A DNA stretch of 64,000 nt from Octopus bimaculoides (lineage: Eukaryota), in the NCBI RefSeq assembly GCF_001194135.2, contig NC_068989.1, positions 55,443,251-55,507,250 on the forward strand. Direction: 5' to 3'. The position numbers and the translations under genes are program-made. Shown piece after piece: positions 1-26,157 of the stretch. The notes under the pieces are model-generated. The model had not been told where the DNA came from, did no database searches, and saw only the letters and a program-made list of their open reading frames with translations. How positions within the stretch are numbered: the first letter of the stretch is position 1; each line of letters opens with the position of its first letter.

Positions 1-362
1 AGAAACTGAGCTACAACTGATATTTCATCAATTCCCTTAAAACAGCCACGAAAGACTATCATTAACATAAAACTCAACTGATGAGTTTTTCTTGCTTGGT
101 GCTTGAAACATTTGACTAATTTTAAGGCAAATGAAATAGAATCTGTAAATAATAAGCAACCATGAAATTTCACTGACTTTCATTGTTAATCAGAAGACAC
201 TAATTGATAACTAAATCAAATATGACACAACTAAATGACTAATCCAGCAGGTACAATCTTTACAGGAGTTAAAGGAAAAACTTATGTAAATAATCTCAGA
301 ATCAGGAGTGAAAGTAATATGTTAAAAACTGTGTAACTGGAGTCATTGATAGGCTGCAGAAA

Positions 363-426
363 TCAAGGCACATGCACTGTGGACTTTTCACAAATTGGTA
401 TTAATGTTCCAATACTGGCTATCAAG
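363..426 (-). CDS. Candidate short terminal or poison exon directly after the PAI exon (phase 2): SLIASIGTLIPICEKSTVHVP*
   Basis: cttaac followed by a long pyrimidine tract (cctattttttcctttttgtttgttccacag|; AG 428-427) defines a 79-nt intron from the 505 donor. 64 bp = 1 + 21 codons. Confidence 0.38.
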
Positions 427-505
427 CTGTGGAACAAACAAAAAGGAAAAAATAGGTTAAGGGTCATTGTGGAAAGAAGGTTATAATGGTATGCAATGCC
501 TTTAC

Positions 506-671
506 CTGTTAAGTATTTTGCTAACACAGCCATGCGACACTTGTAGTTGTCGGCTGATTTCACATGGACGGACACCTTGAAGAGCAAGCTGCAGAATCTG
601 AACTCTCAAATGGTCAGGTAGAGGGCGCCCATTAGTGAATTCACGACCATACTGATTGATGTTTCGACCAC
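506..671 (-). CDS. Pax-beta: Paired-box (Pax) transcription factor, internal exon encoding the PAI subdomain; most likely Pax-beta class
   Basis: Manual translation: G|[54 protein letters not shown]|R, with the paired-domain motifs NGRPLP and [18 protein letters not shown]. Acceptor tttttttctttctattgctaattaacag|GT (AG 673-672), donor AACAG|gtaaag (GT 505-504). 166 bp, phase 1 in, phase 2 out, the usual Pax intron position at KILxR|Y. Paired-domain call is near certain; the Pax-beta assignment rests on recalled diagnostic residues ([15 protein letters not shown]). Confidence 0.93.
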
Positions 672-1071
672 CTGTTAATTAGCAATAGAAAGAAAAAAAG
701 ATGCACATTTTAAATCAGCTGCTTCATTCAGGGATTATGAAAAAAAAGTAAAGAAAAAATGTTTAACATCATCATTAATTTGAAGGTAGTTAGTTAATTA
801 CTTAAAGATGGTCAACACACAAAGAAACAACAGCAAGTTATGTTATTAAATGACCAATCATGGAAGATGGCTTAGGTGATTAGATGCTTCAAGAGGTTTC
901 AGATGTGTCTATCTGAAATCTTTAGATCAGTTGTTATCTATGAGAAATAGGCATTGTTGATGGTTAAGTAAACTGCACATAGTAAGTCAGTAACAAAATA
1001 ATATTAGAAGAGAGAGAAATTGGATAGAATTGAAGAGGTAAAGATAAAGACTAAAAGATGACAGAGACCGA

Positions 1072-1312
1072 TAGAACCCTTGAGTATTCAGATTACTATC
1101 AAATATAATGCTTGTTTAATCACACTGTTTTTAATTAATCATGCATTATGTTGTAGCTTTGAGAGATATTTGATGATGTGATTGCTTATTTTTAAAATGA
1201 CATTGTAGGATAGAAATGAGAGACTGGATCTGGCTGGTGTGAACATAAAACAGGTAGAATATCTGGGCCAGATACGACTGGTTTAAATGTTAAAGGGCTA
1301 AAATAGCTGTAA
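1072..1312. mobile_element. piggyBac-like MITE, copy 1
   Basis: aaccctt...aaagggcta ends; body alignable by eye to 39436-39664. Confidence 0.6.
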
Positions 1313-1540
1313 GCCTAAAACTCTTGCCTTGGTGTTGGTTGAGATTATCAAATATTTAAAAAAAGTTCCATGGTCATTGTCAAGTGTTTAACTTGCTATA
1401 TTCATAGTTAGGCGAGTTAGACAAGGTAGGTAAATCAACTTAACCATCCCACCAACACAGGCAAATACATAGATATGTATGAGTGCATATATTTGCATGA
1501 TCTTGGAATTTAGGTTTGGAATTTTTTGCCTAAGAATAAG

Positions 1541-1721
1541 NNNNNNNNNNNNNNNNNNNNNNNNNNNNNNNNNNNNNNNNNNNNNNNNNNNNNNNNNNNN
1601 NNNNNNNNNNNNNNNNNNNNNNNNNNNNNNNNNNNNNNNNNNNNNNNNNNNNNNNNNNNNNNNNNNNNNNNNNNNNNNNNNNNNNNNNNNNNNNNNNNNN
1701 NNNNNNNNNNNNNNNNNNNNN
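1541..1721. other. Assembly gap (others at 2694-2818, 31456-31465, 37466-37475)
   Basis: N runs, mostly abutting microsatellites. Confidence 1.
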
Positions 1722-2818
1722 ATATATATATATATATATATATATAAAAGCAGACTGACAAGCAGATGAACAAACAAAACTTTTAACATTGTCTTAATGC
1801 TCCTTGTCTCTGTCTGTCTGTCTCTCTGTGACTGAGCAAGTGAATAGACATGTAACTCTCACAATAACAAAGACATACAAAAGAGAATTAGCAAAGAGGA
1901 GTGGCTATGAGAAGAGAAATGTGTTGCCAAAAATATGTAAGGAAAACTATAAAAATAAAAGAAAGGTCAGAGAAAGTTAGAATAGAAAAAGACAGTAAAG
2001 AGTAGATAGTTTTAAAATGAAGCAGAAAGATATAAAAACTGCTGCCAATAACATACATCATAAAATGGTAAATAACAGTTTTACATCAAAATTGAAATAG
2101 TTAAGATGATTGACATATACCAATTTAAAAAGGAGCTGGAATAATTAGTAGATCGAAGAATAATTGAAGCAATGAGTGGTCAAAGGAATAGTCTTAAGTG
2201 AGGTAAGGCTAAAAAAAAAACCCAGTTATATTCTGACATATAACATTTCAAATAATAATAATAATATTCAATATTTCTTTAAAATATATTGCTCTTTATT
2301 TTATTTTGTTTTGTTCTCCTCTTTTTTATGAGCATATTATTATAAAGTGAAAATTTTGGCAAATTTCCACCCTGCTGATGTCAAAGAGATTTCTATCAGG
2401 GTAGAAAGTTGAGCAATGTCATCAGGCTGTGGTAGATTTCAGAGTTTTCAACATGGGAAGTTTAAGAAATGTATTCTCTCTATTGTTATAATTCAGTGTT
2501 TTACCAATGTGGTCAGGTTTCAATATATAATGCAGGGTAATGATTGGAAGGTATGATCAGATGGTGTTAAAAGTGATTATAAAGGGTAGAAAGTCTGGAA
2601 ATGTGATTAGGCTTTGATAGACTTTTGAGTATTAAAAGTAGCAGATTATGTAATAGTAAAGCTGTCACAGACAGCAAAGTGTGACCAAGCTGTNNNNNNN
2701 NNNNNNNNNNNNNNNNNNNNNNNNNNNNNNNNNNNNNNNNNNNNNNNNNNNNNNNNNNNNNNNNNNNNNNNNNNNNNNNNNNNNNNNNNNNNNNNNNNNN
2801 NNNNNNNNNNNNNNNNNN

Positions 2819-2849
<31 letters not shown>

Positions 2850-3589
2850 GTATTTCTTATTGAAAAGAAAACTTAAAAATAAAAATATATCAGACATTAG
2901 AGAATTAAGGTATAAATCAAATTAGCAACTGATTTAGGTGTTAGCAAGCAAAATGTAAGGTAGTGAGAAATGAATCCCTGCATACACTTCACTGATGTAA
3001 TATCTCTCTGGAGACTAATAAACTTCTGGATGTTCAAGCAATATGTTTGACAGTAGTAAATGTAACAGAGAAAAGATACTATATGCTATACACAAGAAGA
3101 CCAATTAACACTGAAGGATCATTCTATTACATTCAATTGGGCCTATCATTTAAGTTAGGTACTTAGATTACACCAAGAATCTGACCATGTACACACAGAC
3201 CCTATTCTAATCTGAGTATAGAAATTATATAATAACAAGGATAAAATGTCTCGGGAAAAGAAAAAAAAATTTAAATAATTGTTATAATTATTAATAAACA
3301 AATTAATAAATAAATAGGAAAGTAAAAACAAAATATGAAACAAGTAAGAAAAGCTAGAATGATAGAGGTTTCTGCTGAATGTTAGACTTAATGGATATTC
3401 ATAACAGAAAGTAACATAACAGAATAAGCATATTCAGATATATGAGTAACCCATTTTGAAATCAGTATTATTTTCCAGATGACACAATCATCATCATTAG
3501 TATAATGCTGCACAAAGTCACAGAAATGTATCTGCCAGCACTCAACCACGCAGAGAACTTCTGTTTCATATATTCTCTTGACTCTATAT

Positions 3590-3940
3590 ATCTTTTATCA
3601 TGTTTCAGTCACTAGACTGCAGCCATGCTGGGGCACTGCTTTGCAAAATTTTAGTTGAACAAATCAGCTCCACTAGTTATTTTTTTAAACCTGGCACTTA
3701 TTCTGTTGGTCTTTTTGACAAAACCACTAAGTTATGGGGATGTAAGCACACCAACACTTGTTGTCAAGTGGTGCTGGGAAACAAGCAAACACACACACAC
3801 AACGGGCTTCTTTCATTCAATCTACCAAATCCACTCACAAGATTTTGGTCAGTTCGGGGCTATAGAAGAAGACACCTGTGCAAGTTGCCATGCAATGGTA
3901 CTCTAATCCAGAACCATGTGATTGGAAAACAAACTTCTTG
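3590..3940 (-). mobile_element. Full bipartite SINE (head + internal microsatellite + 3' module)
   Basis: Same head/(CA)n/3' module order recurs at about 50130-50500 and 55110-55520. Confidence 0.72.
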
Positions 3941-4410
3941 TTGATTTTGAAGCTTTGGGCTGCTAACTTTAATCAGACAATTAAAACACGACATAAAAGT
4001 AAGCGTTATTACACACACACAGAGTATGTACTTATCCACCTATCATGAGTACAAGATCTGCAAAGTTAGCATCATCACAATTATATGTCTGCTTTTCCAT
4101 GCTGGCATGGATCATTATCAGTCTGAATGAGACATTATTTGGACTTACTTTTCTCCTAGATGAGCTGGGGACTACATCACACCTTTTCATTATATACCAA
4201 TACTATTTTTGTTACTCAGTTATCATACGTGATATCTCTACTGTTACAAAGGCAACAAATAGATTCAACATTCACATATATCATAGGGCTGTGCAACAAT
4301 TCCATTCTACATAAGATTCTCTTTCCTGATTCCATAGAAATTATTTCACTTTGACCATGTCAATACACAAATCAATTTGAAACCAAATAACTCAGTTTTT
4401 AATCAGATAC

Positions 4411-4416
4411 TTTATT
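4411..4416 (-). terminator. Candidate polyadenylation signal for the 5880 terminal exon
   Basis: AATAAA on the minus strand at the end of ~1.2 kb of U-rich DNA, followed by GU/U-rich sequence. Confidence 0.4.
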
Positions 4417-5626
4417 AAACATAATCTCATCACCCCAAAATAAACATTCATTATATCATTTTGCTTTCATCATAGAAGAATTCAATCTTCATTTATATGC
4501 TTTCAAAAAATTTTGTAAATTGTTAGAAAAAATTTACGCATAAAAGCACTTTCAATTTTTAAATCCTAAGACATAGTTTTTTTGTTTTTAATTTTCAATT
4601 TTTTTTTTCTCTTACTAATTAAAAATCTTCAAATATTGTAGAAAATATTTTTCCCCACCTATTTTAGGTTAAACATGTCAGTCTTAAAACATACTGTCTT
4701 GCTTGATGAAAATTCAAATATATACATATAATCATTTAGATGTCACCTAAACAATTTTTTCTTTAAATTATATTTTATTAAATTAGAGATAAACTGATTC
4801 AGTTCAGTTATCAATATTACAAATAAATTTACTGAAATTTCACCACAAACTAACATAAGTTTAACAACTACAACGTCAGCCTCTGGCATAAACTTTTAGT
4901 AAAACAAAATTTGATATGTAAATACGAGTAGGAGTGAGAGAGAGATTCATGCTTTGTTCCTTGTTTTCCCTTCCAGTCCACCACAAGAAGGGGGTATTTT
5001 CTTATATCTACTTATTGTAATTTTTTTTTTTCTTTTTAAAGACAGCCAAGTATTTTTTGAATAATAGAATATAAATTCATTGGATTCAGCAGTGCAAGAA
5101 AATTTAGAATTTAAAGATATGAAACAATATTTCAAATGTTTGTAAGTTAAGGTTGTTATTTAAGCAGTCAATATTCTGGGAAATTAAGAGAATCTGGAAA
5201 AAGTACTAAAAAAGTAAATTTATTTCAACTAATTTCTGTTTATGAAACTAAAAAAAACTAATTCTAATTTTTTTAAAACAAAAAAAATTCACTAGATTTT
5301 TCTAAAATTTCAGATTAATAGTTAGTAAATTATTTTGTGATTGAATATCCTTTAATTACATCCATAAGTTTGCACACAAATTGATTAGTGAAATGTTTCA
5401 GCTTTATATTATTAATTAATGATAATCTAATTAGACAGTTAAAATGATAGAGATCAATAAAGTTATGTAATGTTACAGTGGGGAAGAAAAGAAGAGAAAT
5501 TAAAAATAAAGTCAACAACAATTTTAAAAAAATATTATAAGGTTTCAATATCTAAGAGGCTAAACAAAATGAATAAAAAAAAAACAAAATAAAAAAAACA
5601 TAAAAAATGGATTCCCCAGGGGATTT

Positions 5627-5880
5627 TCATGTACCTTCGTCATTTGAGAAATCAACTGAGTTGTTGTTAGGACGGCCAGCATCTAGAAAGCCATGTGCTG
5701 CCACAAGGGTGGCATCATCCCTGGCCACATCCAAGGCAATACGTCTACCTGAGGGGGTCCAGTAGCTGGAGGCTGGTGAGGAGCTTGATGATGATGTAGT
5801 GGTGGTGGTGGTAGTGGTGGTAGTGGTGGAACAGGAAGGTTTCACAGCAGTCACACTTCTTTGTCTGGAGGGGCGGCCTG
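5627..5880 (-). CDS. Candidate alternative last exon (phase 1): AGRPSRQRSVTAVKPSCS(T)n(S)nPASSYWTPSGRRIALDVARDD...NDEGT*
   Basis: Branch-like ccctaac about 32 nt upstream; acceptor attattttag|cag| (NAGNAG, exon start 5880 or 5877, both phase 1). 254 bp = 2 + 84 codons. GC/CpG-richer than the flanks and followed by U-rich UTR-like DNA with AATAAA at 4416-4411. Confidence 0.62.
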
Positions 5881-6235
5881 CTAAAATAATTGATTACAGT
5901 AACTAAGTGGTTAGGGCTATAGTAGCTGGTTTCACAGTGAGAGGACATAGGAAACCTACTACTAAGGACAACAGTTTTAAAACAATTTATTAGGATCTAG
6001 TCAAATTACTATAATCATTATTGTTGTTGTTGTTATCATTAGCATTATTATTATTATTAAACTACCCTTCATACTAATAGCATTGTTATCAAACCTTTGT
6101 AAATCTTACTTTGAGAATAATTTTTAAAATATCTTTTCGCAAGCTTTAAATGCAACTTAATAACTAAAGAAATAATAAAATAAATAAAATAAAATAAAAA
6201 TGGTTAAGAGTAAGGATTTAAAAGGTGAGAGGGTA

Positions 6236-6241
6236 TTTATT
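6236..6241 (-). terminator. Candidate polyadenylation signal for the 8010 terminal exon
   Basis: AATAAA on the minus strand followed by a U-rich downstream element (ttttttattttattttattt). Confidence 0.33.
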
Positions 6242-6486
6242 TTGATATCACAATTCTAGTACACAACACTCTTTCAAAACAACAACTGTACACAATGTTT
6301 GTGCTCTGTACAACAAAATCTGTCTGCATATATAAACAGCATGAATTTCGCAGGGAGTCATGTGTACATAAATTTATCTAGCAGTAACACACTAAGGAAT
6401 TCAATCAGAGTGTAATAATACAATAAGAAAAACAAAACAAATTACCAATTGTCATTAAAAGTTAAGCTAAAACATAGAGCTCCAGC

Positions 6487-6527
<41 letters not shown>

Positions 6528-7930
6528 TTTCATAGCAATGCAAAGATAGTTGTATCACTTTGATTACACAATGGTAGAACATTCTCTTTAGTTTGCTTCA
6601 AAAATATCTCAAAGGAATATACAGTGCCATGGAAATTCATAGCAAAGTAATGATATTTTTGTTAAAGAATGAAAACCAGGTATTAGAAATAGTAGTTCAC
6701 AAAGTACTAGTTTTCTGGCTTAAATTTTAGTCTTAACCAGTTTATGACAGACTGCCAAAAGTTCTGAGAAGGTTACAAAATGTGGGAGCATTTCAATCCT
6801 ATTTGTAATTAGTCATATAAGATAACTGTATACCAATAACCAGATGATTGGATGTTTTTCTTTTTTTTTTTTAACTTTCACTCATAGAAAGGAGAGAAAT
6901 TGTCACTGAAGCAGGAAACCTTGGTTGAAGAGGGTTTGAAATTAGAGATTGAACAAATGTTATACAGAATTGGAATGATGTTGGGATCTAGAACTTGAAC
7001 CAGCCTTCTTGATGATGGAAGTTTTCTGATATACCAGCTAGACAAACAATGTATTCTCAGCACAGTAAACAATTATTTGAAATACTTTATCACAGCTAAG
7101 AACTGAAAATTCAGAAGTATTTCCAAATGTTTTCTGAGTCAATTTAAACACACACACACACACACATGCGAAGTTTCAGTACATTCAGTGTCTTTATTTC
7201 ATTTATTTCAATCCACCACATAATTTTTTATTTAGTGGCTAAAAGTTGTATTTGGAATTATTTTATTAACTAAATTACAAGGAATAGTATTGAATACCAA
7301 GTTTTTAGTTGTTTAGAAATAAGAACGTGTTTCATGAGATATACAGTAAATAGGATTATGGACGCTCTGCCAAATAATATATTCAGCATTTATACCCCTT
7401 TGTCATTCTCATATTTAAATTTTTTTTTTCTTTCTAGATTTCTAATTAAATTTCCTCAACGAACAGTCCAGAGAAAAAGAAGAAAAAAAAAAGAAAAAAT
7501 AACAACAAAAAAGATAATATTAAAACTGTAAAAAAAAATCAACAAAACAACAACAATCAACATAAAACTAATTCTTTAGTAAATTCAAGCATTTTAAAAA
7601 ACATAATCATGGTTTTTTTAATTCATGTGGTTTCAATTATTTGTCAGTACAGTTCCCACTTGCTAACTACATACTTCAAAAAAAGTACAAAACAAAAACA
7701 AACAAAAAAACTGATAAAAGATACAAACAAAAGAACAACAAACAACAACTATTGAATGAAACATCAACACAAGTTTCACCATTACAAAAATAATTATGGT
7801 ATGTTATATGACAAATAAGAGAACTAGTATGTTAGTATGGATTCCTTTAGGAGTTGGGTTCTTAGTAAATAACTAACATAAATCCAAGCTGGTTTTATAT
7901 ATTCTTATTTTATTTACAATTTTTTTTTTC

Positions 7931-8010
7931 TTAGATACAGGTGTGGATTTTACAACTGGAAGTTCTCTTTTCTATTTGTAAGACTGCCATCTTTTTTCCA
8001 ATCTTATTCT
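7931..8010 (-). CDS. Candidate alternative last exon (phase 1): ENKIGKKMAVLQIEKRTSSCKIHTCI*
   Basis: tgctaac branch point plus atgtctcctgcacag| acceptor (AG 8012-8011). 80 bp = 2 + 26 codons. Followed by up to ~1.7 kb of U-rich sequence with AATAAA at 7198-7193 and 6241-6236. Confidence 0.5.
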
Positions 8011-8870
8011 CTGTGCAGGAGACATGTTAGCACATTGTGTACACATTTGCAGCTTCCATCAGATTAATCAGTGACTGATCACATGTCAACATGTCGGGAA
8101 TAAAAGAATTAAAAAACATTTCTGATCTTAATGATGCAAGAAAAAAAAAACAAAAAAAAAACATGGTCTTCAATTCAATTCAACTTTTGTAGTGAGGCTT
8201 GGATAACTTAGTAATATTTAACAACACTTTAACTTAAAAATCCATACCCATCATCACTATACTTACACACACGCACACACACATATATATATATATACAC
8301 ACACGTGTATACAATTAGACATAGAAATACTGCTGCTGAGTTTAGTGCTCCACACAGATTATCATAACAGAGTCTGCTTCCAGTATAATGGTTTGGTTAC
8401 TACTGTACTCAGTAGTAGTACCAGTTATGATATACAGAGAAATTGTAGTATAAATTACGATAAACAGAAGTTTATATCATATGTTCTTATATACATGTCA
8501 CTGCTGTGGTAGCTTGGAACTCTGCACATATGATTTCTGTAACAAAACATTTATAAAGTGTTTCCTTAATGATCCGTTGGGGTTAAGCATCCAATGTACA
8601 CAGTTCCAAACAATCACAATAGTGAAATGCATTTAGTAACAAATTATATAAACTTGCATTTGTCATAATTTCTCATATATACATATGATCTTACTCGCTG
8701 TGGGGGCAGTTAGCTCCCCTGTTAGTACAGGGATTTGTGCTTCTTTACAGCCGAGAAGGATTTTTACCTCTTATTTCTAGCAATGTAGGTGCTACTCTGA
8801 ACTGTCAGTCACAATTAGTGACAACTGAATTCTTCCTTTTTGGTTTTATATTGCTTATAGTTATCTTCAT

Positions 8871-8936
<66 letters not shown>

Positions 8937-10339
8937 GAGCCTGGTGTTGCCATCCGGTTTCACCAGTCCTCAGTCAAATTGTCCAACCCATGCTAGCATG
9001 GAAAGTGGACATTAAACGAAGATGATGATGATGATATATGCAATCAAATATCGAACAGTGAGAATGAGTGCTCAACACTACATTGGTGGATATCAATATT
9101 CTTCATTTGTAGCAAACAATGGTTTCATGTAGAAGGAATTTATTAACAGTTATTGAGCATGCCACACAGAAACATTGGTACTCATCTCCCATTTGGATAA
9201 GAATGGATACATAGAGCTTGACATCGCCTTCTAGCTTGCCAGCTCTTGTCAAACCATCCAACCGATGACAGCATAGAAAGAGGACATTAAATAATGATAA
9301 TATATTATATATAAGACATTAAATATATAAGACATTAAAACTGCACCACTATATTCATGATAAAGAAGTAGAGAGGTATCAGCACATTTTATGCATAAAG
9401 CATTATAATATGCTAGAATAGAACAAAATATGTAGTGTCAAAAACCCTATTAGTTGATGGGCTAATATTTTTCCATATATCTAACAATTACAGAAGATAT
9501 CTCACACATGGTTCTGCTTCATTGAACACCATCATCATAGGTATATGCTAACTGTAACATTCCAGATTTGGAACAAATGGATGCCCAAGTATATACACAA
9601 AAATGTGTATGCAGACAAAGAGAACTGCTTAGATATACAAATTAACAATTAAAGCCGCTTCAAATTCACAAGAAATGGTTTGGTTATATATATACATACC
9701 TACATGAATGTGTGTATGCATGTGCTCTTATACACTATAAGCTCCAGTGCAGGGAGATATACATTTTGCTTCAGTAAACAAGAAGCATTGTCAAGTTTCA
9801 CTGAAGCAGTGGAAAAATATTGCTTCAAATATATAACATTCGAGTACTATAAAGACACAAGATTGCTCAAAGCATAGTGATTATGTATAAAACATATATT
9901 TAGTGACTGTTAAGTGACATGAAAGTGTTTTGAATTATCAATCCTCTTTCTTCTACTGGTATCACTGATACAATGACTATAAGCTACATTAACATCTTAT
10001 ACACATAAAACATCATAGGCGCACACACAAACCAAGTATTTACGTGCATGCTTATATGCATGTGTGTGTGTGTATACACAAAACTGCTGAATCACTAGAG
10101 GTGATAAATTACAGGATTCAATACAAATGTGGACTATTCTTTGGTACATTAAAACTGAAAGACAACAACTTCCAATACTCAGATAACATTAAGACAAGCA
10201 GTTTCTTCAAAGTATCATTTCATATTTCAAAACATATTCAAACAGTGAGTGTTTCAAAAGAAATGTTGGCTCAGTTTAACAGCTGATGACCAGAAACAAG
10301 TAACTCTGAGTACTGGATAATGGAGGCTTTCAGTTATAA

Positions 10340-10373
<34 letters not shown>

Positions 10374-10430
10374 CACATATATACATACATATATATATAC
10401 ATACATATACATATATATATGCATATATAT

Positions 10431-10431
10431 A

Positions 10432-10465
<34 letters not shown>

Positions 10466-10908
10466 GTTTAACATCCATTTTTCATGCTGGCATGGGTTGG
10501 ACGGTTCGACTGGAGTCTGGGAAGCCAGGAGACTGCACCAAGCCCCATCTGATCTGGCACCGTTTCTACAGCTGGATGCCGTTCCAAACGCCAACCACTC
10601 CAAGAGTGTAGTGGGTGCTTTTCACATGCCACTGGCACAGGGGCCAGAGGGGCTGGCATTGGCCACAATTGGATGGTGCTCTTTACGCGCAACCAGCACG
10701 GGGGTCACAACTACAATTTCTATTTGGTTGTAATTTGATTTGATTTTGATATTGATGTACTTGACTCAATAGGTCTCCTCAAACACGGCATGTCACCCGA
10801 CAATCTAAGGTACTTTTGAGTGGGCTGGTTATGCAACACTGGGGTAGGTTACAGCTGTGAACTCACTTTATTTGTCGGGTCTTCCCAGTCACAGCATACC
10901 TCCAGAGA
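10431..10908 (-). mobile_element. Long SINE with (GAT)n tail; near full-length copy
   Basis: (CAT)n then catgctggcatgggttggacgg.... Partial plus-strand copies at about 8938-9035, 41470-41655, 46150-46375, 54950-55100 and 60130-60440. Confidence 0.8.
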
Positions 10909-10994
10909 TATACATACATACATATACATGCATACATACACATACATATATATACATATTTATACATACATATATATATACACAAACACACACG

Positions 10995-11048
<54 letters not shown>

Positions 11049-11050
11049 TG

Positions 11051-11212
11051 AGAGTGTGGCTGCATGGTAAGAAGTTTGCTTTCCAACCACATGGCTCTGG
11101 ATTCAGTCCCACTGGATGGCACCATGGGAAAGTGTCTTCAACTATAGCCTGAGCCAACCAAAGCCTTGTGAATGGATTTGGTAGACAGAAACTGAAAGAA
11201 GCCTACTCTGTG

Positions 11213-11247
<35 letters not shown>

Positions 11248-11250
11248 AAG
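11051..11250 (+). mobile_element. tRNA-derived SINE head ending in (GT)n
   Basis: gtggctgcatggtaagaagtttgctttccaaccacatgg...ggattcagtcccactg. Related copies at about 23090-23290 (+), 46378-46530 (+), 37272-37450 (-) and 56585-56740 (-). Confidence 0.82.
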
Positions 11251-11766
11251 CACACACACACACACATAAATACATACACACAAAGACAAGGGCAGGTTTT
11301 CCAATCAAAAATGATGTATAAACATCAACTGAATGACCTACACATTGAATCAGCATGCAAACTGGCTGAATATTCCACAGACTCAGGTACCCTTAACTTA
11401 ATTCACTGGTAGAATCAGCATGACACTATGTCAAAGTTGCTAAACCTTTGAATTAGAAGTACAGTCCATCCTCTGAGCTTCAGCACCATTTCTGTACACA
11501 GAAATTTGCTCACAAGATTTGGACTGATTCGATGTTAAGATAAAAAGATATTTGTCCAAGATGCCATGCAATGGAATTGAACTCAGAGCTTTATTGTTTT
11601 GAAGCAAGTGTTTTAACCATTCCACCATGTATATGAAAATGCACTTGTGCATATCTATTAAAACAGTGAGTCTAACACTAGACATTTTGTTTCAGCTACA
11701 GACAAGCTAGTAAAACATCTTGTTCCTTGTATAGTGGAAGATGGGCAAAAATATAGCTGGACATAC

Positions 11767-11814
11767 CAATAAAGCAAGGAGTAAGTATGGCGGTTTTGGT
11801 GTTGGTGGTGACGG
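11767..11814 (-). CDS. Candidate 48-nt symmetric (phase 1-1) cassette exon: AVTTNTKTAILTPCFI(G)
   Basis: Acceptor ctctatctctgtgtacag|cc and donor TTTATTG|gtatgt. Length divisible by 3, stop-free in the host frame, retains CpGs. Confidence 0.38.
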
Positions 11815-12335
11815 CTGTACACAGAGATAGAGTATGGGTGGTGGTGGTGGTGGTGAAGATACTAACAACCGGAGGTTTCTTATGGCTTTGAAATGGAGGC
11901 AGGTAGGGGATGAGGCAGTAAAATGGTATCAAAGCCCCACCCAGTACACACACACACAATAACATGAAGGTAGACACATACATTTATTCATGTAGACAAT
12001 ACAAACATATGCACATACACAAACACACACACGCAAGCATACAGCTTGTATTGGATATGAATAAACAAGCAGAAATAATAAACCAGCAAAAGCACAACCC
12101 TCCATGCAGCTTTCTGTTAGCTTATGTAATACACACACACACACATACACACACACACACACACACAAAGAGGATTAGATTGCCAATCTTCAATCCACTG
12201 CAAGACAAAGGCCTCAGCATGTTGTCTTCACCAACCACTATATAATATGGAGGCTGTGAATCTGAGCTTGAGATCATACTGGTTTGATGAGCCTACTTTG
12301 TCACAGTGGCCCAACATGGCTTGGCAGAGGGGGCA

Positions 12336-12371
<36 letters not shown>

Positions 12372-14879
12372 TATACTTGTCATATTAAATGCAGAGCAGA
12401 CTCCCTGCTATTCTACTAAAAGAAAAAAAACACAAAACAGAAAGCATAACCATTTGTGTTTATTCATACACTCGTTAGATAAATATTTTCATCAACATGC
12501 ACAAACCAAGGGGACTAAAACAGAAGAAATGACTAAACAATGATAAGAAATGGGTTAACCATGTGTAAAGGTAATTTTTATGCAGTCATTGAAGCTAATG
12601 TGTGAAATCATATGACAGTTCTTGAAACTTTCATAATCAAAAGAAGAACTGATAGTGAAGTTAAGATATGGCAATACAGTTTGTTTTTATAGATTAATAA
12701 GCTAATGATATACTACATGTTAACAACAAGGATAAATACAACTAACATAAATCAACCATCTGTTCATTTAACCATAACTGTACACAAAATGGTGAAAAAT
12801 ATATTAGGAAATTTACCCCCCCCCCCCACTCTTTTAAAATATTATTAAAGGGCTGTGACATTGGGAATTTAGGTGCTATTTTTGGCTTTCATTTTCTTTT
12901 TTTCTTTTTTTTTTGCATTTTGTTGTTATTGTTTAATCAAGAATTAAAATTAAATAGAAGTGAGAAAATGCTTTTGATTGTAAATGAATTCTTTGTGCTA
13001 CGATACATTCTTTAAAGATTGAGTCATTCAAGAAAACAACTTACCAAGCGGAAAAGATCGAAAGAAATTACAGAAGAAGACACCTTACTGACTAAGTCAC
13101 TAATCAAGACATTAGTTACATATATTATAAGCAAAGGTTAACAAAGCAAAAAAGAATGAACTAAATCTTGCAAAAGAACAAAATCAAACAAAATGGTACC
13201 AACATAGGAATTAGTCTATCTTCATTAGTATGCTGGAATTGTCAAATTAATCAGTGATTATAACTTGGAGAAGAACCTATTAAACTATCTTACTAAATTA
13301 AAGTTACACACTCTGTAGTTAAGTTTGCAAAATTGTCCAAGACATAAGACTCGCAGAAATCTTTGCTGTACAATCAGAAATTGGTCTTTCAATAAAAAGA
13401 CACAAAATGCAATCTAACCGACAGCTTTAAAGTTAATGCCAGCTTTGTGCTACATTAAGTCATTAGACAAACACTAATACAAAATTAATTTTCAGGTGAG
13501 AAGGAATTTAATTTAAACTTCACTTGGTTATTATCTTTATTTTTATTACATTCAGTTTATTCTCTGTTTAACCCTGAAAAAAGTTATAAAGTTAAACTTG
13601 AAGGTGAATTCACCTGGAAAAAAAAGGTTCACACATAACTTTTCAGTTGAAGCAAGCAATGACAATCTGAGTTGGATATTTGTTTATATGAGATTTTTAG
13701 CAGAGGTTGAGAACAAGACAATATAATAAAACAGACATGAAATCTGAGAATTTTATGAGTTGTTGCAGGAAGCTCATAGAATCAGTATCACCAAATGGTT
13801 GAGAAGTTTATTTCTCCATCTTGAGGTCAGCTTGATTCTACAAAGTGGCATCTTTGGCAAATGCCTTTTACCATAGCTTTAAGTCAACTCATATCTTGTG
13901 AGAGAAAATGGGTAGTCAGAAATTGTATGGAAGCCCATTGAAGGGATTGTAGCTGTAATTCAAAGAGCTAACCACGTCACACTATTATGATTTTTGGCTG
14001 AGAATTACATTAAAAGTACATATGTGCATGTGATATGCAGCCACCTTATATGCTAATCTAGTGAGCTTGGAAGTTTCATTTGATTGAACAACCAAAAACT
14101 TATGGTCAGAAATTCTGACTCTGGTCCATTTAGTGAGAAGATGACATTCACATGTGGCAAAAGTACTTGCAACGTGAGAGGGATAATTCCAGTTGGTATT
14201 CAAAGCAGGGCCTCAAGGCTGATGACTAAGGACCAAAACAATATAAGGATTTCTTACACAGGAACAAAGTTTCTAGTAGAAACAAGAAAGGAAGTGAGAG
14301 TACAAGGCATTCATGCTTTCCTCTCAAAATTTAATGATGTAAGATAGATAACTAGAACCAGGAGCTGAAACTGTGTGGCGGATTCTATCTCAACTTTGTG
14401 GCACTTCACTCAATTGAGATAACATAATGTAAGTAAAACTTATCTGAAGTAATGAAATCCAAAAGTGTATGGTGAATACATGCCAGAAGTGATGACACAG
14501 GGAGTGTTTTATTGTTGCTGATTAATGATTTTAAGATAAACAATCTGTAGAGCAGTAGTGAAATAGTTTGGTAAACCAATCTTATATACAGCTAGACAGT
14601 ATTAAGTTAATTCAGAAAACCAAATATGGCCTTAAGTATTTATTGTACGACTTGCTTTATTAAGTAAACCAAATAGACTGGATTAAAGAACTGACTTTGT
14701 TAGATTACTCTGATAATATCTGATTTCAAATATACACAATGTTGAATCGTTATAGCAGTCACAAAATCTTAAACACAACAATTTCATTGATCAGAGCAAC
14801 TCTATTCAAAGGGCAAACTGTACAAATGGAACAGATATAAGGAGTATGACGATGCATGCTAGTGAGACATAGATCACTA

Positions 14880-15150
14880 TAAAAAGGACTTGAGATAATA
14901 ACTGGGGGGATCACAAGTAAGTTGAGAAAGTTGCTGGGCATTAGATAATAATGTGTGCAGGAGAGGTAGCTGCTCTGTTATAGATATGTGATGAAAATGA
15001 ATGGTATGTGTTGGGTGAGAAAATGCTACGAAGTTAACAGTTGAAGGCATCTTTGATAAAGGAACCACAAGGAAAGTATGGAACAAATGTTGAGGCCAGA
15101 TTTAAGTATATTTAATTTCACACCACAGATAATAGGCGGATTGAGAAAGA
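14880..15150 (+). mobile_element. RTE LINE 3' end remnant
   Basis: EKLLGIR..CVQER.L...HVM.MNE...GRPRK.W-like residues across frames. Confidence 0.55.
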
Positions 15151-15221
15151 AAAAAATATCATAGCAAAACTTGTCAACCCATAGCAAGATTAAAAAACAG
15201 ACCATTATTATTATCATTGAA

Positions 15222-15435
15222 GGCGGTAAGCTAGCAGAATCATTCACATGCAGGGCTAAATGCTTAGCAGCTTTTTGTCCAGGTTTACATTCTGAGTTCA
15301 AATTCTACCAAAGTTGACTCTGTCTTTTATCCTTACAGGGTTGATAAAATAAGTACCTGTTGAACACTAGGGTCAATGTAATTGGCTCATCCCCTCCCCG
15401 AAATTGCTGGCCTTGTACCAAAATTTGAAACCATT
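15222..15435 (+). mobile_element. Older copy of the 53739 SINE family
   Basis: ggcggtaagctagcagaat...ctgagttcaaattc...aaataagtacc. Confidence 0.8.
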
Positions 15436-17969
15436 ATTATATTACTACTACTACTACAATATGAGAGTAATGTAACTAGAACATCATAAATTATACAAAA
15501 GAGAAAGATATAATGAGAACCAGATTATGCAACAGCAGTAAAAGATATATAGTAAAATGCCCTTTAAGAGATTTTGTCATTCTTGATTATAAATCCATGT
15601 TGAACCAAGATCATAACAATTGCTGTCCCATTGTTCCCTTTTGCCTAGAATATGATTTGTTCAAAGATATATCTGATAACAGTTGTTGCCTTTTCAAATG
15701 TTATAACTGGAGTTATACACCTAGAATTCTTTTCTGAACTTTCAAAGATATTATTTTCTTTATAAAATCATAATCAAGACTGGTCAAAGATCTTTTCAAG
15801 TAGGGAAACTACTTAAGAAAATTTTCTCTACTTTGAAAAGATATATTTCATATACATTTCATTTGTACACTCATTGAATATAAATAAACATCATAAAGTG
15901 AAGAAACTAGTTGCCTATTATGAAGCAACAGAACACAATTCTTAAGTTACTTATAATATTCATTTTGTACTTGCATTAATCATCTGTCATCTTACACAGA
16001 TGCACTTAGAAATTCAAGGATAAAACTAATGAAGTCAAATTCATTTTGTTTTGAATTCAAGTGTTGTAATGTTATGTCCCCCAAATACACAAGAAATTTT
16101 ACTATAATTAAGATGATCAAATTTATAGTTGCAATATTTCTGCACCAGAGAATGATGAATTTGAGGACTATTCTTCAGTTTGATTATGACCTATTTCTCC
16201 ATGGACATCTTGGTCTCCAATATTTCAAGCACCATATTAACAGTATCTTTGTTCTTCTGGCATTTCTAATACAAAAGTGTCTCTACAGCCCAAATAAAAA
16301 TTTACAACAATTTTTCTTTTTAAATAAGCTATACATTACAACAATAAAATGTTTTGTAACAATGAAATTTGCTTTGATGACATGGCTGAAGTAGTAATGG
16401 TAGTAGGTAGCAGATATTAAGATGTGATGTTAATTTTTCTTCAATAGAGAAACATTTCTTCAGTCTAAGAAGTTGGTAATTTCCAACAAACATGGCAGTC
16501 AATGAAATATGAAAAATAAGGACCCATATGAAGCAAACCACAGCTAAGAAAATTAATGGAAAAGTTTTAGGCTTTGCATAATAACATCAAGAAAATTTTT
16601 TTTCCATATACAGGAACATACGTCATTCCTTAATTGAAATGTAATAGATTAAACCTGGCTTCATTATGTAAAGAGTAAATAATCAAGAACTTGATAGGGA
16701 CCCATGCTGGTTTGAGGACTGAATTTGATAATAAAAATAGGTCAACAATTGAAGAATTCTTCCTTAGTGAAACAGAGGGCATAACATTGAAATATTAATA
16801 TAAAATCAGATAAATATTTTTAGTAAACATACATATTTAGCTTGTACTTGTCTAGTAGGTGACTTGATTTAAGACTATTGAAACCAGAGCAATTAAATCA
16901 TGGAAGAGCCTTTCTTGTCTTTAATAATGCACAAAATAATTAAATTCACTTTAAATTTATTTCATAAGAGGCCAACATTTTCATCATACAACTGTGACCT
17001 AGTCACCAACACAGTTGCATTGCAACTACGTAAAGATGATAATGAGGTTAAATGACATGTTTTTCTTTCTTAGTCTAGGAAAACAGAGCTAAACCTGGCC
17101 TGTCTCAATGTTTTTTACAGTTTCATTGGAAATTCTTTGCTCTACTTTTTACAGCAGGGTCAAAAATGTGTGTTTACTAAAAACTTCCCCCCACTCCCAC
17201 ACTCTCTCTCTCTCTCCCCTTTCTATCAGCACTGCCACCAAGTTAGCCAGGTGGAGAGAGTTGCTAAAACATCAGTGTAACAAAGCAAAACTTGTCAAAG
17301 GATGCTTGAACTCAATGTCACAACAGTACACAAGGACAAGCACGCTGCAAGTCCATTGAATGATAGGTATATCTGTGCTTTTAAACCATAATGAAGGCAG
17401 CCACTCTAAGAGACTATTCAGATAAAAAACTTAATGGTAAAGCCAATATAATTTTTGTTCTGTAACCATTTATAAAACCCAATGATCTTAGCATGGAGTG
17501 TTTCAAACAAGGTAGCTAGGTGTTGTGAAAACTAAATTTTCCATTTATTATGCACAGGTATTGCATTTTCAATGCAGAAGGTCCCCTTGTGTTGAGTTAT
17601 CTTCAAGTTATATATAATATCTTAGAGATCATATTCTCATATATTTTTTGTAGTCTTCAAAATTTTCTAAAGAATGTGTGTATGGGTGCATGCATTTTAA
17701 GGCAACCACCGGCCATATAATACCTAAAGGTGATAGATTTTAGGTAATACATGGCTGGTGGTGATAGATTTTGGATAAAACATAGCTGGTGGTTACCTAA
17801 AAATGCATGCACACACATATGCAAAACACATTATCAACTTTATGAATGTAAACCTGCAAAATAATGGAAATAGAAAAAAGAGCTTGTGAGACTTAATTTC
17901 GCAGGTTTGGCCAGGTAAAAGTTGCAAGGGAAGGGAGCAGAGTTCAAGCCATCATCAAATCGCTGCTAA

Positions 17970-19315
17970 AGGGGATGTATCTAATTGGCTGTTGGAACAT
18001 AAAAAACTTGATTGACAATGAAGTATCTGCTGAAAAAAAAAACTTATTTACTTTCCATGGAACTTGCTATAAGTACACAACAGATACTGTTGCCTTATTT
18101 GAAACCCATTTTGCTGGCAAGGGTCAATATTCTGAAACAAGAGGTGACAACACTATTTTTTGATATGGAAAAGATAATTAGGAGAGAGTGTTTAGAGTTA
18201 GTTTTACAGTTAAGAAAATATTAATCCAATATTTTACTGAATAACTACCTGGCTTAAATTATGGATGTATGTCTATACTTCTGTCTTTTGGTCACTCAGT
18301 AACATTGATCAGTGTCAATGCACCAATATAGTATGATTGTGATGATGATAAAAATCTTTTTTATGAGCAACTAAAAAGCATTATTGAGAAAATTTCAGCT
18401 GGAGATAAAGTAATAAATTTCGAGAGACAATAATGCAGAAATTGGTAAAAATTTTGAAATATGAATGGTGTTTAGGGCATCATGAAACAAAACAATCAAA
18501 GTTAAACTTCAATGGTTTACTTATGCCACAAGTGTGCTCAGAATTGAATTTCACTGTAGCATTTTCTTTGGCCAGAAACAGATTTACAAAGGGAACTCAG
18601 ATTCCAAGAAATGACAATGATTGATTATGTTCAAACTAGAAGAGATTTGAATGATGTGAGAGGATGTCTTGGTTTTAAGAAGTACAGTATTCAAAGAGAT
18701 CACAATTTTGCATAACCTAAACACAAGTTCAAAATTAGAAAGAATATTCAATGTTTCAAGAGGCTTGATGTTGAAAAGCTAAAGAAAAATATGTCAGGCA
18801 AGGGGATTAAAACAAGGATTTAATTTATTGGTAGATACCACTAAATGGGATGATTTCAAAGACCAACGTAAACCAAATTTCAAAAGCAGTAACAGAGCTG
18901 CAAAATCTAAAAACCCATAGCTGTCACACTTGCAAAATAGCAGACTGAGGTGGGTCAATATATTACTCATATGAAAGACAAAGGAAATACAAAGTGCCTA
19001 CTCTATAGAGAAGAACTATGTTCTAAGACAATGCAAACCTCAGTAAAGACTGCCTTAAATTTGTTTTGGAAAAAAAAATGCGAACTTCATCTGGAAAGTT
19101 AGGAAATACTAGCAACTGATAGGATGTCTGAAGAAAAAGCACACTCAAAACGTCCATCCATACATTTTGAAAAGAACTGCATTAAACATGCAAAGCTAAA
19201 ATGAAATGCAAGGAACAGCAACCGCATTGATATCAATCATAACATCAAATGTTCAACTTGCAACTAATTTTCTCTATCTAAAGCCGATCTTGTTAATCAC
19301 TTGAGGCTATATGAA
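17970..19315 (+). mobile_element. Degenerate, internally deleted RTE-clade LINE (APE endonuclease start plus C-terminal Cys/His tail)
   Basis: IGCWNIKNLIDN...DTVALFETHFAGKGQYSE resembles the RTE APE N-terminus (GxWNVRTL...DIAALSETR..GQ). YEQLKSIIEKISAGDKVI and CSTCN..SKADLVNHLR follow. Many stops and frameshifts. Confidence 0.8.
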
Positions 19316-19739
19316 TGAAAGCTATCAAATAATAAATCTTTGCTACCTGAAAGTATGAAAATCATATAATAAAATGTCTTTTTACCAGGAGTCAAAAAAA
19401 ACACATGTCTGTAGAGAATGCCAAACATCATGATTCTGCATGGTATTTAACTGAAAACAGCTGTTTATGTGATGGTTGTAGCAAACAGCAGATCATCAGC
19501 TAAGCTAAAAAGACATCTTTGCTTTGCAGCTTATCAACATGTAATGGTCATACTCATTTTGGGGTCAACTGCCATCAGTTGCGTGTGTGTGAGTGTGAGA
19601 GAGAGAGAGAGAGTGTGTGTGTGTATGTGTGTGTGTGTGTGTGTTAACAGTCCCATTTGTAATGGGAAAAACCACAATAAAGATAAAATTAGGTCAAGTG
19701 CCCAGACATTGGTTTCCCAAGACCTGGGGTGGCACTTAA

Positions 19740-21130
19740 AATGAATGGCTCTTGACTGTGTGGATTCATGACAAGAATGGATGTAATGTACTGATAAATC
19801 CAATTCCCATTCAAATCAAAGTTTGTATAAAATGCAGAAAGTGAAAGGTGCACATCTGATGCAAAAACCTGTTCTTGCTGGTAAAGACTGGTTTGAGAGG
19901 GTTAAGAGGCACCTGAATTGACACAACATTAAAATGGCCAGTCAAATGCCAGTGCTGCAACTAATTATCAAGGAGGAACTGAAGAAAATCTTCAGTGATG
20001 GAGGTTATGTATAAGAAAAAAAGAGTACAACACTGATAAAAACCAGGATTTTCTCAAAGAAAATACCTTCCAGGAATTTTATTTCTACTGAAATAAAATC
20101 AGCACCAGATTTAAAGGTTTCCAAAAGTCAGTTGATACTTCTTGTGCAAGGAAATGCTACAGGTGATATGAAACGAAAGACCCTGCTTGTGTATCACTTC
20201 ATAAATCCAAGAGCTTTCAAGGGTTATAGTAAATTTGATTTAATTGTCATTCAGCATTCAAATAAGGATTGGCAAGAAATCTTTTTCAAGACAAGTTAAC
20301 GAGCCTTTTTTGCCTCTAGTAGAAAGGTACAATATCAGGTACAATATTGCCAATGAAGCATTCATCTTTCTAGACAATGCACCCACTGAACACAAAATAA
20401 TTTTTCTTAGTTGTTGGCTGCTATTTCTAACTTTCGGTGTGTGGTGAAGCAATACTTGCTGAATCCTAAATTTTAAATTGTGTCTATACATTTACTGATA
20501 ATGGTTTTTTAACACACCGAATTACTAATTATCAATTAATTATTAATTTTTACCCTATATCTGTTTGTGTGAAATATATTTCCAAGAACATAACATTGCT
20601 CCAGTCAACAGGTCAAAGCGTGATAGCTAACTACAAGGCATATTATCTGAAAATAACTTCGAAACAACTGACGAGGAGGATAAGTCTACAGTTAAAGATT
20701 TCTGGAAGAAGTCCATCATAGATGCAGTGAATAACACAGACAAGTTATGAGGTTAAAAGAAATCCTAAGCTACAGTGAAAAATATAGTAGCCAGACTATA
20801 TCCATGATTCAACTGTATTGTCATCACCAGTAAGTCTAAAACAAGTTCAGCAAGTCATGCTGACACTGGCATATGACAGTTTGAAGAAGTGATCAATAAC
20901 AAGCAATGGAGTTGCTAGGTTCTCACTGAGAAAGTTTGCCTAATGAGGTGTCAATAATGCCAGAACCAGAGCAGGCCAAGAAGAGAATACAAAAGCTACA
21001 AAGCTACACTCATTCCACTTCAAGCTGACAGTAAAGAATAAACGACTGGAACTTACAGAAGAAAGTTTGCTAGTCTCTGCAGATAATGACTCTGGTTATG
21101 AACATAACAGAAAAATTACAAAAGGAGTTA
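19740..21130 (+). mobile_element. Tigger/pogo (Tc1-mariner) transposase remnant
   Basis: Frame-shifted translation gives AGKDWFERVKRH..HNIKM, KKIPSRNFISTEIKSAP..K.SKSQLILLVQGNATGD.K.K.LLVYH..NPRAFKGYSK, FIFLDNAP, and PKNITLLQ..GQSVIANYKAYYL, matching CENP-B/DDE_1 Tigger transposases. Confidence 0.85.
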
Positions 21131-21739
21131 ATAAAAAGCTCAGTTCTTAGATTGAATTTTGCAAAGACATAGTATGTTTGAAGCCAATACTCCACAGTCT
21201 TTCTTCTAGCAGGCACCTCTTCATGCACCAGTTCCCATCACATGGCCATCAACACCATTTATGGTGAATATATACTATATGTACTACAGATGTATTACTG
21301 CAATGTTACTATATTATTTATTTCTCTTCAAATGCTTTTACATATACATACTATACGCAGCATGTATTTAAAAATTGATATTTTCAGCAGAATGCATATC
21401 AATTCCTGATATGGAAACCAATAGCAAAATATACTTTATATGACAAAATCTCATGTTATGGAGGATATTCCAGAGTGAGGAATGCCTCTTTTGCTTTCCC
21501 TCTCTCTCTGAGAGAGAGAGAGAGACAGAAAGTGTGTGTGTGTGTGTGTACCACGAAAAGTGCTCAGGAGAATCCTCCTCTGCAGAATAAAACTTTAAAA
21601 TGAAGAAATGGTGGGAGAGGGTAAGTTTTATTTCAGACCTGAGAGAAGAAGTCTATGCCGCACTACTTTTATAGTCAGATAAATAATTACAAAAGCAAAA
21701 CATCAAGTTTATTACTCTTCCACTTTATTGATTCAGAAG

Positions 21740-22720
21740 CTGCTTCTGACACGATCTGGTAGAAGGTCCCATGGAAATTGATGACAGTTATAAGTATAGA
21801 CATCAAGACAGAGCAAATTATAGAGGGGAAACAGCAGATGTGCAATGATCATTGACAGCTGAATGGATTGTTTTGAAGTACTGTGTACATCTAAGACAAG
21901 AATTGCCAGCTGTCCCCCCAGCCATTCTAAAATCTTCTGGAAAGTTCTCACTAAAGAACTGAATGACTCAAATGAAAGTCTGGCACTCACTGAATCCTCT
22001 CTCTCCATAGTGAGGTTGGTGAAACAAACCTAATACCCATGATATTTGACAAATTGAAGATGTCCACTAAATAGAGACAAAATGGGAAGAATAAAGAAGC
22101 ATGAAAATAAATGGCACCAGTTGCAAGATTCTTTGACTTATTGGAGAAATTATCAGGATGTATGGTTCAACAGTAGAACACATTACGGTGTTAGCTTTCT
22201 GTGAGTATCATACCAAATGGATTAGAAGACATGAAGAAATGGATCTCATTAATAAATCTACTGCTTACAACATTAAGAAAGGCTTCTGGAAAGAGAGTGA
22301 AGAGATATCAGCTAGGAAAACAAAAACTTTGATTATATTTCCTCAATTGCAACCTACGGCTCAGAGATATGCACTGTAAAAATCTGAAGGAACAGGGAGA
22401 AATTTTTGAAATATGGTAATTTTGGTCTATGCTAGGGATATCAATGAAACCGACATGAGAATACTTTCATATAAAAGAGCGTTTCACATGACATGCATCA
22501 TTACTAAGATAAATAGGAGGAAACTGTAATTGTTCAACCATGTAATAAGAAAGCTATCCAATAACAATATAGTGCAGGCATTCAGCCAAGACATTCCAAA
22601 CACAAGACTAATGGCGTTAAGAGTCCTAAAAAGTGGATTACTCCAGATTCCTGAAGATACAGAGTGGCCAGTCACACCGGAAAGCCTTGCATTCATTCTA
22701 CAAGTTCAATGTGTTCATTC
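21740..22720 (+). mobile_element. Degenerate RTE-type LINE 3' fragment (RT C-terminal region)
   Basis: SIATYGSE.CT.K and TKINRRKL.LFNHVIRK motifs resemble RTE (IATYGSETWT; RRKLxYFGHVxR). Confidence 0.65.
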
Positions 22721-23820
22721 ACTCAGAGACTACATGGATGAAGAGGTGAACAGATGAGACAGTGATGACAGAAGAACCAGAATGTATGAGAAAAGTGTGG
22801 AAGAGTGTAATGTTAGGTAAAAGAGGTGAGAAAATGGTGGCTTCTAATAGAGGAGGAGAAATGTTAGAGGAGAATGATGGATCTAAATAACAGGTGGCAC
22901 AGTAACATGGAGGAGTATAGAAGGAGTAATGCTAGATAGAGAGTAAGCACTACATGATGATCTCTTAAACACATGCTTTGACAGGGAAAGGAGCAAAGAT
23001 TATAAACTGAGGGAGAGAAGTATTGAGTGTATCTATCTATTTATATATAAATAAATAGAGAGAGATAGACAGACAGACAGGCATAATGGTTGTGTCATTA
23101 AGAATTTTGCTTAAGAACTACATGGTCAGGTGTTTGGTTCAACTGTATGGACACTGCCAACTGGTATCTTCTACAAGAGTTCCAGGCTGACCAATATCAT
23201 GAGAGTGAAATTGATAGACGTAAACTCAAGAATCTCATCATGTGCATGTGTGAGTGTGTTGGTTCATGTTTACCTTCATATTCACATGCATTTGCTGACA
23301 GCAAACAAAAGCCTCACCTTTCATATGGACAGTGTCATTAGCTTGCAGTCCATGTTGAATGCATGTCTGGCTTCTCAACTAGTTGCACAGTTTCGTAACA
23401 AAACACTCTCCATTCATACAAATGGTTGTTTGTTTCCAGATCTCCCACGTAAACATGGCTGTTCATTGTTTCATAATATTCTGATTAATATATGTAAATT
23501 TATATCGCGGGCTCCTCAGTATATTGAGGGTTTCTGTGGCCAATAGGTATTTATATTTATTTAGGTTTTAATTATTTCTGTGGGAGGTTTTGGAACATAA
23601 CACCTGCAATAGTTGAGGGATTACTGTATGTATATATGTGTGTGTGTGTGTGTGTGTGTATACACATACACCACACACACATATATATACACATGTATGT
23701 ATCTCAATCTTGATCTTATTTCATGAAGGATACAGTAACACAAGCATTACACAGAATTAGATTACAGTGCTGGGACATGTAATGATCTTAATTAATTGTC
23801 AATTTAAATAGAATAATTCC

Positions 23821-24013
23821 TTAACCCATTTGACCAACCCTAGTTTTAAAGTGATCTAAATTAAAACAGTTCATCAGATTTTGATGCTAATCTATATTCC
23901 AAACACCAGCCTAACAATAACAAAGGCGTTTTACAAAATTTTTCTTTCTTTCTAAAAATTAATTGAAACAAAAGTAGCGAATTTCAACCAAAATATAGTA
24001 ACGAAAGTGTTAA
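23821..24013. mobile_element. piggyBac-like MITE, second family
   Basis: TTAA-ccc...gtaacgaaagtg-TTAA termini. Confidence 0.5.
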
Positions 24014-25974: not shown

Positions 25975-26019
25975 ACACACACACGCGCAGGCATGTGTGT
26001 GTGTGCGTGTGTGTGTAAG

Positions 26020-26070
<51 letters not shown>

Positions 26071-26071
26071 T

Positions 26072-26157
<86 letters not shown>

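Follow-up and report, generated by a model that had tools for sequence, protein, structure and literature searches.

The solved paired domains (PDB 1pdn, 6pax and 1k78) place their beta-hairpin and turn on the DNA backbone and in the minor groove, and the third helix of their PAI subdomain is the DNA-recognition helix, which reads the major groove. In the Pax2/5/8 class, the paired domain lies near the N-terminus of the protein and an octapeptide is present. A further Pax family, Pax-beta, is said to have been defined by Schmerer et al. in 2009. Its members are without an octapeptide (PMC5356317, PMC5333810), and Pax-alpha has been proposed as its sister clade (PMC5356317). [quoted passage not shown] In the survey of Navet et al. 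(PLoS One 2017, PMC5333810; S1 Table), the protein Ocbimv22000807m.p of Octopus bimaculoides (Scaffold10474:604998-663118, 1046 aa) was given the proposed name Pax-beta and placed in that family, and three C-terminal motifs were given for mollusc Pax-beta.

Here we analysed a 64,000-nucleotide stretch of O. bimaculoides DNA (hereafter the window; GC content 34%), near the left edge of which an exon encoding part of a paired domain had been annotated. With a probability of about 96%, positions 506-671 are the second coding exon of O. bimaculoides Pax-beta (Ocbimv22000807m), which encodes the PAI subdomain and is spliced on one side to the exon for an N-terminal arm and on the other to later exons located to the left of the window. 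Octopus Pax-beta is already known, having been identified and classified in 2017, and the present result is an annotation, not a discovery.

The PAI-encoding exon

The exon lies on the minus strand at 506-671 (166 nt), is entered in phase 1 and left in phase 2, and encodes the beta-hairpin and the three-helix helix-turn-helix of the PAI subdomain. Read 5' to 3' on that strand, the region takes the form ctttttttctttctattgctaattaacag^GTGGTCGAAAC ... AATACTTAACAG^gtaaaggc, where ^ marks an exon boundary. A pyrimidine-rich tract ending in ttaacag, with the acceptor AG at 673-672, precedes an exon body that begins GTGGTCGAAAC and ends CTTAACAG, and the donor GT follows at 505-504 (gtaaag, 505-500). 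From 669 downward, the exon reads as 54 residues followed by a split AG^ codon (Arg). This frame is open for 58 codons only, and the stops that bound it sit in the splice signals themselves: the TAA of ttaacag at the acceptor and AG^GTAA at the donor. The GC content is 0.46 in the exon versus 0.32-0.33 in its flanks.

As the initial annotation had pointed out, the open-reading-frame track misses this exon. At the default threshold of 60 aa, the only entry over it is an out-of-frame ORF of 74 aa (363..587), and an in-frame fragment started by TTG (502..609) is listed when the threshold is set at 30 aa; prokaryote-style ORF tracks miss internal eukaryotic exons of this kind.

The 55-residue exon peptide matched the Pfam PAX profile (PF00292) with E = 3.8e-23 and 82 bits (cut-off 22) over profile positions 4-56 of 125, and the solved paired domains of Pax5, Prd, Pax8 and Pax6 matched it at E = 1e-19 to 5e-17, the recognition helix SHGCVSKIL being the same in the exon and in all four. 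These matches bear out the annotation of an intact PAI exon, and the unusual residues on which that annotation had remarked, NQYGREF and ILQLALQG, are both carried by the exon as described. In the AlphaFold2 model, the PAI part has a pLDDT above 90, with helices at residues 230-241, 246-253 and 257-264.

Paired domains are believed to descend from the helix-turn-helix fold of Tc1/mariner-type transposases, and the exon could in principle represent such a transposase domain in a repeat-rich intron. The surrounding DNA is indeed repeat-rich, and the peptide gave a weak match to the Pfam model HTH_Tnp_Tc3_1 (E = 0.0042, below its cut-off). However, the match to the PAX model is better by 19 orders of magnitude and exceeds the curated cut-off of that model, no transposase ORF or inverted-repeat context was found, and the sequence is identical to that of a published Pax protein. 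The score gap between the PAX and Tc3 models, together with this identity, refutes a transposase origin, the probability of which is vanishingly small, and leaves a Pax exon as the preferred reading.

Gene structure and the N-terminal arm

A six-frame stop-to-stop scan revealed one outstanding open frame on the minus strand, at 32997-33851, which contains an ATG at 33791. The coding part of the first coding exon (33161..33791, minus strand) runs from this ATG (33791-33789) to the donor CATTCAG^gtaagc after 33161; it opens with MQIKQE and comprises 631 nt, that is, 210 codons plus one base. This extra G and the GT at 671-670 together form a Gly codon, so both exons splice in phase, giving the reading ...DGRIRHSG-GRNINQ and a total of 265 open codons. 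At the nucleotide level, the junction reads ...CGACATTCAG^GTGGTCGAAACATC... (also CATTCAG^GTGGTCGAAAC), and on its other side exon 2 contributes ...ATACTTAACAG^G (also CTTAACAG^G-TAY) to the junction with the next exon. The 210-residue N-terminal arm that had been proposed to precede the paired domain is borne out by this exon and its in-phase splice. The junction between exons 1 and 2 is predicted from phase compatibility, the published gene model and a transcript-like contig of a relative. In the latter (L001, a 1481-nt Logan contig from run SRR7949667), the arm and the whole paired domain lie in one uninterrupted ORF, indicating that the two are on one mRNA in at least one relative. In addition, both intron positions, the first after RIRHSG and the second two bases into the Arg codon that follows KILN, are found again in genomic ORF calls of other species: P0001 and P0098 lose similarity directly behind DGRIRHSG, and the homology of P0004, P0008, P0009 and P0018 breaks off or resumes at ...GG^RNVNQ and KILNR^Y.

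The 265 spliced residues are identical (100%) to residues 1-265 of Ocbimv22000807m.p, of which exon 2 encodes residues 211-265. The identity extends through the arm, which evolves fast: P0001, the closest of the other sequences found, matches it at only 53%. The published gene model spans 58.1 kb, of which 33.3 kb, from the ATG to the end of exon 2, is inside the window. When the full 1046-aa protein was used in a tblastn search of the window, only the two exons were recovered (residues 1-211 at 33791-33159, 100% identity, and the PAI exon at 675-499), with no homeobox-like exon among the matches; searches with the RED sequence and with residues 267-1046 gave no match anywhere in the window. 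To the left of the PAI exon, the next intron starts with the donor gtaaag at 505-500 and fills the remaining bases (1..505, minus strand), and these 505 bases hold no RED exon. Because the gene runs from right to left, the RED exon and all later exons lie beyond the left edge of the window. The initial annotation had anticipated a RED exon to the left, starting with G TAx and encoding Y-x-x-TGS. Consistent with this, the published protein continues with YRKTGSINPG (YRKTGSINPGQIGGSKPKVTT), a RED start that is absent from the window, which again places the RED exon to the left.

In the published full-length protein, PAX is the sole Pfam domain (residues 214-335; PF00292 positions 4-125, E = 1e-58) and no homeobox was matched by Pfam. 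The protein also carries YDYSLPDRGL, PLDLS and YERNYLIFGDSELEIISVGKNKWIVRNELEL, the three C-terminal motifs given for mollusc Pax-beta by Navet et al., all outside the window. From the downstream exons would come the RED subdomain, followed by a long C-terminal region (about 700 residues) without an octapeptide or homeodomain.

A dead pseudo-exon, a decaying paired-box relic spliced into no mRNA, was considered as an alternative, since the PAI exon is isolated, its closest coding neighbour in the window being 32.5 kb away, and is read here from genomic sequence. Its frame is nevertheless intact, both of its splice sites are canonical and its phase matches that of exon 1, and downstream of it the published model includes an entire RED half and the full set of three conserved C-terminal motifs of Pax-beta. 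Moreover, only 1 of 51 residues differs from the orthologues of oyster, pearl oyster and sea hare, a degree of conservation that neutral decay would hardly leave. We therefore regard a pseudo-exon as very improbable and retain the reading of 506-671 as a coding exon of Pax-beta.

No Pfam match was found on the 210-residue arm, and AlphaFold2 models it as disordered: the pLDDT stays below 50 for the greater part of residues 1-180, and a weak helix is predicted at 192-202. Arms of about 150-215 residues are also present in Lottia, Crassostrea, Pinctada, Bulinus, the Logan transcript and two arm-only ORFs, and short islands are shared among them: M..[IV]K[QK]E at the extreme N-terminus, LL[NS]A[LIV]D, SDDSxEFDDNLF..E.IED and, just before the paired domain, DGRIRHSG. 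Two papers of 2017 include mollusc Pax-beta arms in their alignments without comment on the arms, and the conserved short motifs are a small addition to the published account.

A cephalopod-like locus (L002; ENA ERZ21867824) showed DNA similarity to the window only at 33796-33742 and 33278-33158. The confinement of this similarity to the two ends of exon 1 supports the ATG and the donor as the true coding limits; the L002 sequence, taken with 10 kb on each side, stops short of its own PAI exon. Beyond the two coding-exon ends, the comparison with L002 revealed no conservation of the non-coding DNA that surrounds exon 1. L002 also carries a 498-codon ORF (5157-6653, plus strand), some 3.3 kb upstream of its Pax-beta first coding exon, with no recorded Pfam match and no DNA-level counterpart in the window, possibly an ORF of a mobile element.

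The intron between the two coding exons (672..33160, minus strand; 32,489 nt) is AT-rich, with microsatellites, SINE-like repeats and N runs. The four N runs of the window, at 1541-1721 (181), 2694-2818 (125), 31456-31465 (10) and 37466-37475 (10), are assembly gaps inside simple repeats, not biology; at least three of the four are surrounded by simple repeats, either (TA)n/(CA)n or of the GA type. Dinucleotide microsatellites, (CA)n and (TA)n, occur at very high density across the window, for example at 10290-11400, 25914-27216, 27680-28133 and 41976-42242, and give rise to many spurious long 'ORFs' (YIYIYI, THTHTH, CVCVCV) in the six-frame track. We also observed a relatively GC-rich interspersed repeat, about 180-300 bp long, with copies 73-87% identical on both strands: 8963-9035, 10440-10740 (the reference copy), 37175-37223, 41473-41638, 46193-46376, 54980-55097 and 62241-62299. 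Several copies, including the reference copy, adjoin a microsatellite. The repeat looks like a SINE family, and ARAGORN found no tRNA-like head on it. Relics of a LINE endonuclease or pogo transposase had been suspected at 17.9-18.6 kb and 20.0-20.3 kb. This impression is unsupported, since a Pfam search at E <= 0.01 with nine stop-to-stop frames, among the longest of the intron and of the DNA upstream of exon 1, returned no match. The roughly 30 kb upstream of the start codon (33792-64000) contain no recognisable coding exon, the longest open frames tested there being without a Pfam match, and no GC-rich island at 1-kb resolution.

Class assignment

A protein search with the spliced product returned lophotrochozoan sequences on top, with identities in the paired-domain part of 94-98% for Pinctada, Bulinus, Capitella and Lottia and 86% for Helobdella; it also returned the two arm-only ORFs from genomic contigs, P0001 (53% identity) and P0098. 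We aligned the paired domains of 28 sequences, for which the window product was extended with the published RED half. Ten of these were other Pax-beta sequences, from Crassostrea (K1R3J2), Aplysia (XP_005090697), Lottia (D5SHI0), Capitella (R7TWR1/P0007), Helobdella (beta1 and beta2), Schmidtea (beta1), Pinctada, Bulinus and the Logan transcript. The remaining 17 represented other classes, namely Pax2/5/8, Pax6, Pax1/9, PoxN and Pax3/7 of Octopus or Sepia, and outgroups from insects, an echinoderm, cnidarians, a nematode, a rotifer, a mussel and a macaque. In the Octopus Pax2/5/8 model Ocbimv22007526m.p, the first ~60 residues (MVLGVTTSDGDVMSPFIF...ERHYVWQHDSVPCHTS) resemble a mariner-type transposase fragment, which the gene predictor may have fused to the paired domain.

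Over the 51 alignment columns of the PAI half that the window encodes, the exon is 98% identical to Crassostrea, Aplysia, Pinctada and Bulinus, 96% to Capitella, 94% to Lottia and 78-90% to the Pax-beta sequences of the leech Helobdella and the planarian Schmidtea. The corresponding values are 67-73% for Octopus Pax2/5/8, Pax6, Pax1/9 and PoxN, Sepia Pax3/7 and all outgroups. Three features, NQYGR in place of NQLGG, ILxL/MAL/M in helix 1 and EISRxLQVSHG, are shared by all 11 Pax-beta sequences, the window exon included, and the 17 sequences from other classes have none of them, in agreement with the earlier suggestion that residues of the NQYGREF/ILQLALQG type are typical of Pax-beta.

A paired-domain phylogeny, which had been proposed along with that suggestion, gave the same placement. 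Neighbour-joining trees were built from Kimura distances for 28 or 26 taxa with our own implementation and 1000 bootstraps; among the classes sampled, which did not include Pax-alpha, the bipartition between Pax-beta and the rest was recovered in 951 of 1000 replicates on the PAI columns and in 1000 of 1000 on the whole domain. In these trees, the window exon groups with the founding Pax-beta members from Lottia, Capitella, Helobdella and Schmidtea. The host is likewise lophotrochozoan, as is evident from the exact identity to an O. bimaculoides protein, and its nearest relatives in the comparison are molluscs and annelids. Every feature tested therefore points to membership, and on these sequence comparisons the product of 506-671 is assigned to the Pax-beta subfamily of Pax transcription factors.

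Membership of another class, Pax2/5/8 or Pox-neuro, was weighed against this assignment, as the best-scoring solved structures are those of Pax5 and Pax8 and a weakly supported proximity of Pax-beta to Pax2/5/8 was given by Navet et al. (PMC5333810). However, Octopus possesses separate Pax2/5/8 and PoxN genes, each of them only 73% identical to the exon in the PAI half; with Pax-beta of molluscs and Capitella, this identity reaches 94-98%. The published protein contains neither a Pfam-recognised octapeptide nor a partial homeodomain. The PAI identities and the bootstrap values for Pax-beta (951/1000 and 1000/1000) refute this alternative, which we consider extremely improbable. The identification of the host gene as Pax-beta, as originally annotated, is thus upheld both by the class tests and by the identity to the published octopus protein.

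Probable function and comparison with known systems

By homology with the solved paired domains, the exon would supply the beta-hairpin and turn and a helix-turn-helix with a major-groove recognition helix, and contact with the adjoining half-site would be made by the RED half, encoded in one or more of the exons that follow. Most likely, the product acts as a transcription factor with sequence-specific DNA binding. As Pax-beta has neither an octapeptide nor a homeodomain, its specificity should rest on the paired domain alone, and the long disordered arms on both sides of this domain are likely sites of regulation and partner binding. The literature searched contained no demonstration of DNA binding by the Pax-beta paired domain, in which Y and R replace L and G in the beta-hairpin.

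The conserved islands of the arm suggest roles of their own. The N-terminal M..[IV]K[QK]E fits the psi-K-x-E consensus of SUMO acceptors and may serve as one; SDDSxEFDDNLF..E.IED is acidic-hydrophobic, as in acidic activation domains, with casein-kinase-2-like serines, and may act accordingly; and the basic DGRIRHSG abuts the DNA-contacting beta-hairpin and may form a putative basic extension of it. We tentatively raise the possibility, without favouring it, that the arm of mollusc Pax-beta is a conserved regulatory module and not a mere spacer, and that together with the L-to-Y and G-to-R changes in the hairpin it could give distinct DNA contact or regulation. By analogy with other lophotrochozoans, in which Pax-beta is expressed mainly in the developing central nervous system, the octopus gene would be expected to be expressed there; a search of the literature returned no account of octopus Pax-beta expression.

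Beyond correct annotation, by which the window is marked as the 5' part of the octopus Pax-beta locus, the importance of this result is small. Pax-beta is nonetheless poorly understood, with expression data for a leech and two aculiferan molluscs only and no biochemical data in the literature searched, so that a defined first exon, a 32.5-kb first intron and the arm motifs could help in the design of probes, junction primers and deletion constructs in cephalopods.

In comparison with the Pax2/5/8 class (human PAX5, PDB 1k78; Octopus Ocbimv22007526m), the exon encodes the same fold with an identical recognition helix, SHGCVSKIL. The two are 73% identical over the PAI half, and the NQLGGVF, IVELAHQG and RYYETGS of Pax2/5/8 stand against NQYGREF, ILQLALQG and RYRKTGS in Pax-beta. 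The vertebrate PAX2/5/8 exon for the PAI part is also 166 nt long and has the same boundaries. With other lophotrochozoan Pax-beta proteins, the octopus protein has in common the beta-hairpin, the helix 1 stretch, one further stretch and RYRKTGSINPGQ at the RED start, and with those of other molluscs it also shares an arm containing M..IKQE, SDDSxEFDDNLF and DGRIRHSG. The middle of the cephalopod arm differs in that the glutamine-rich LVIPQPYLHFLQQQMLQ stretch of gastropods and bivalves is mostly lost, and leech Pax-beta has asparagine-rich regions instead (Navet et al. 2017, PMC5333810). From the published octopus model, Ocbimv22000807m, the locus shows no detectable difference: it is the same gene, of compatible size, of which the window contains the first two coding exons only.
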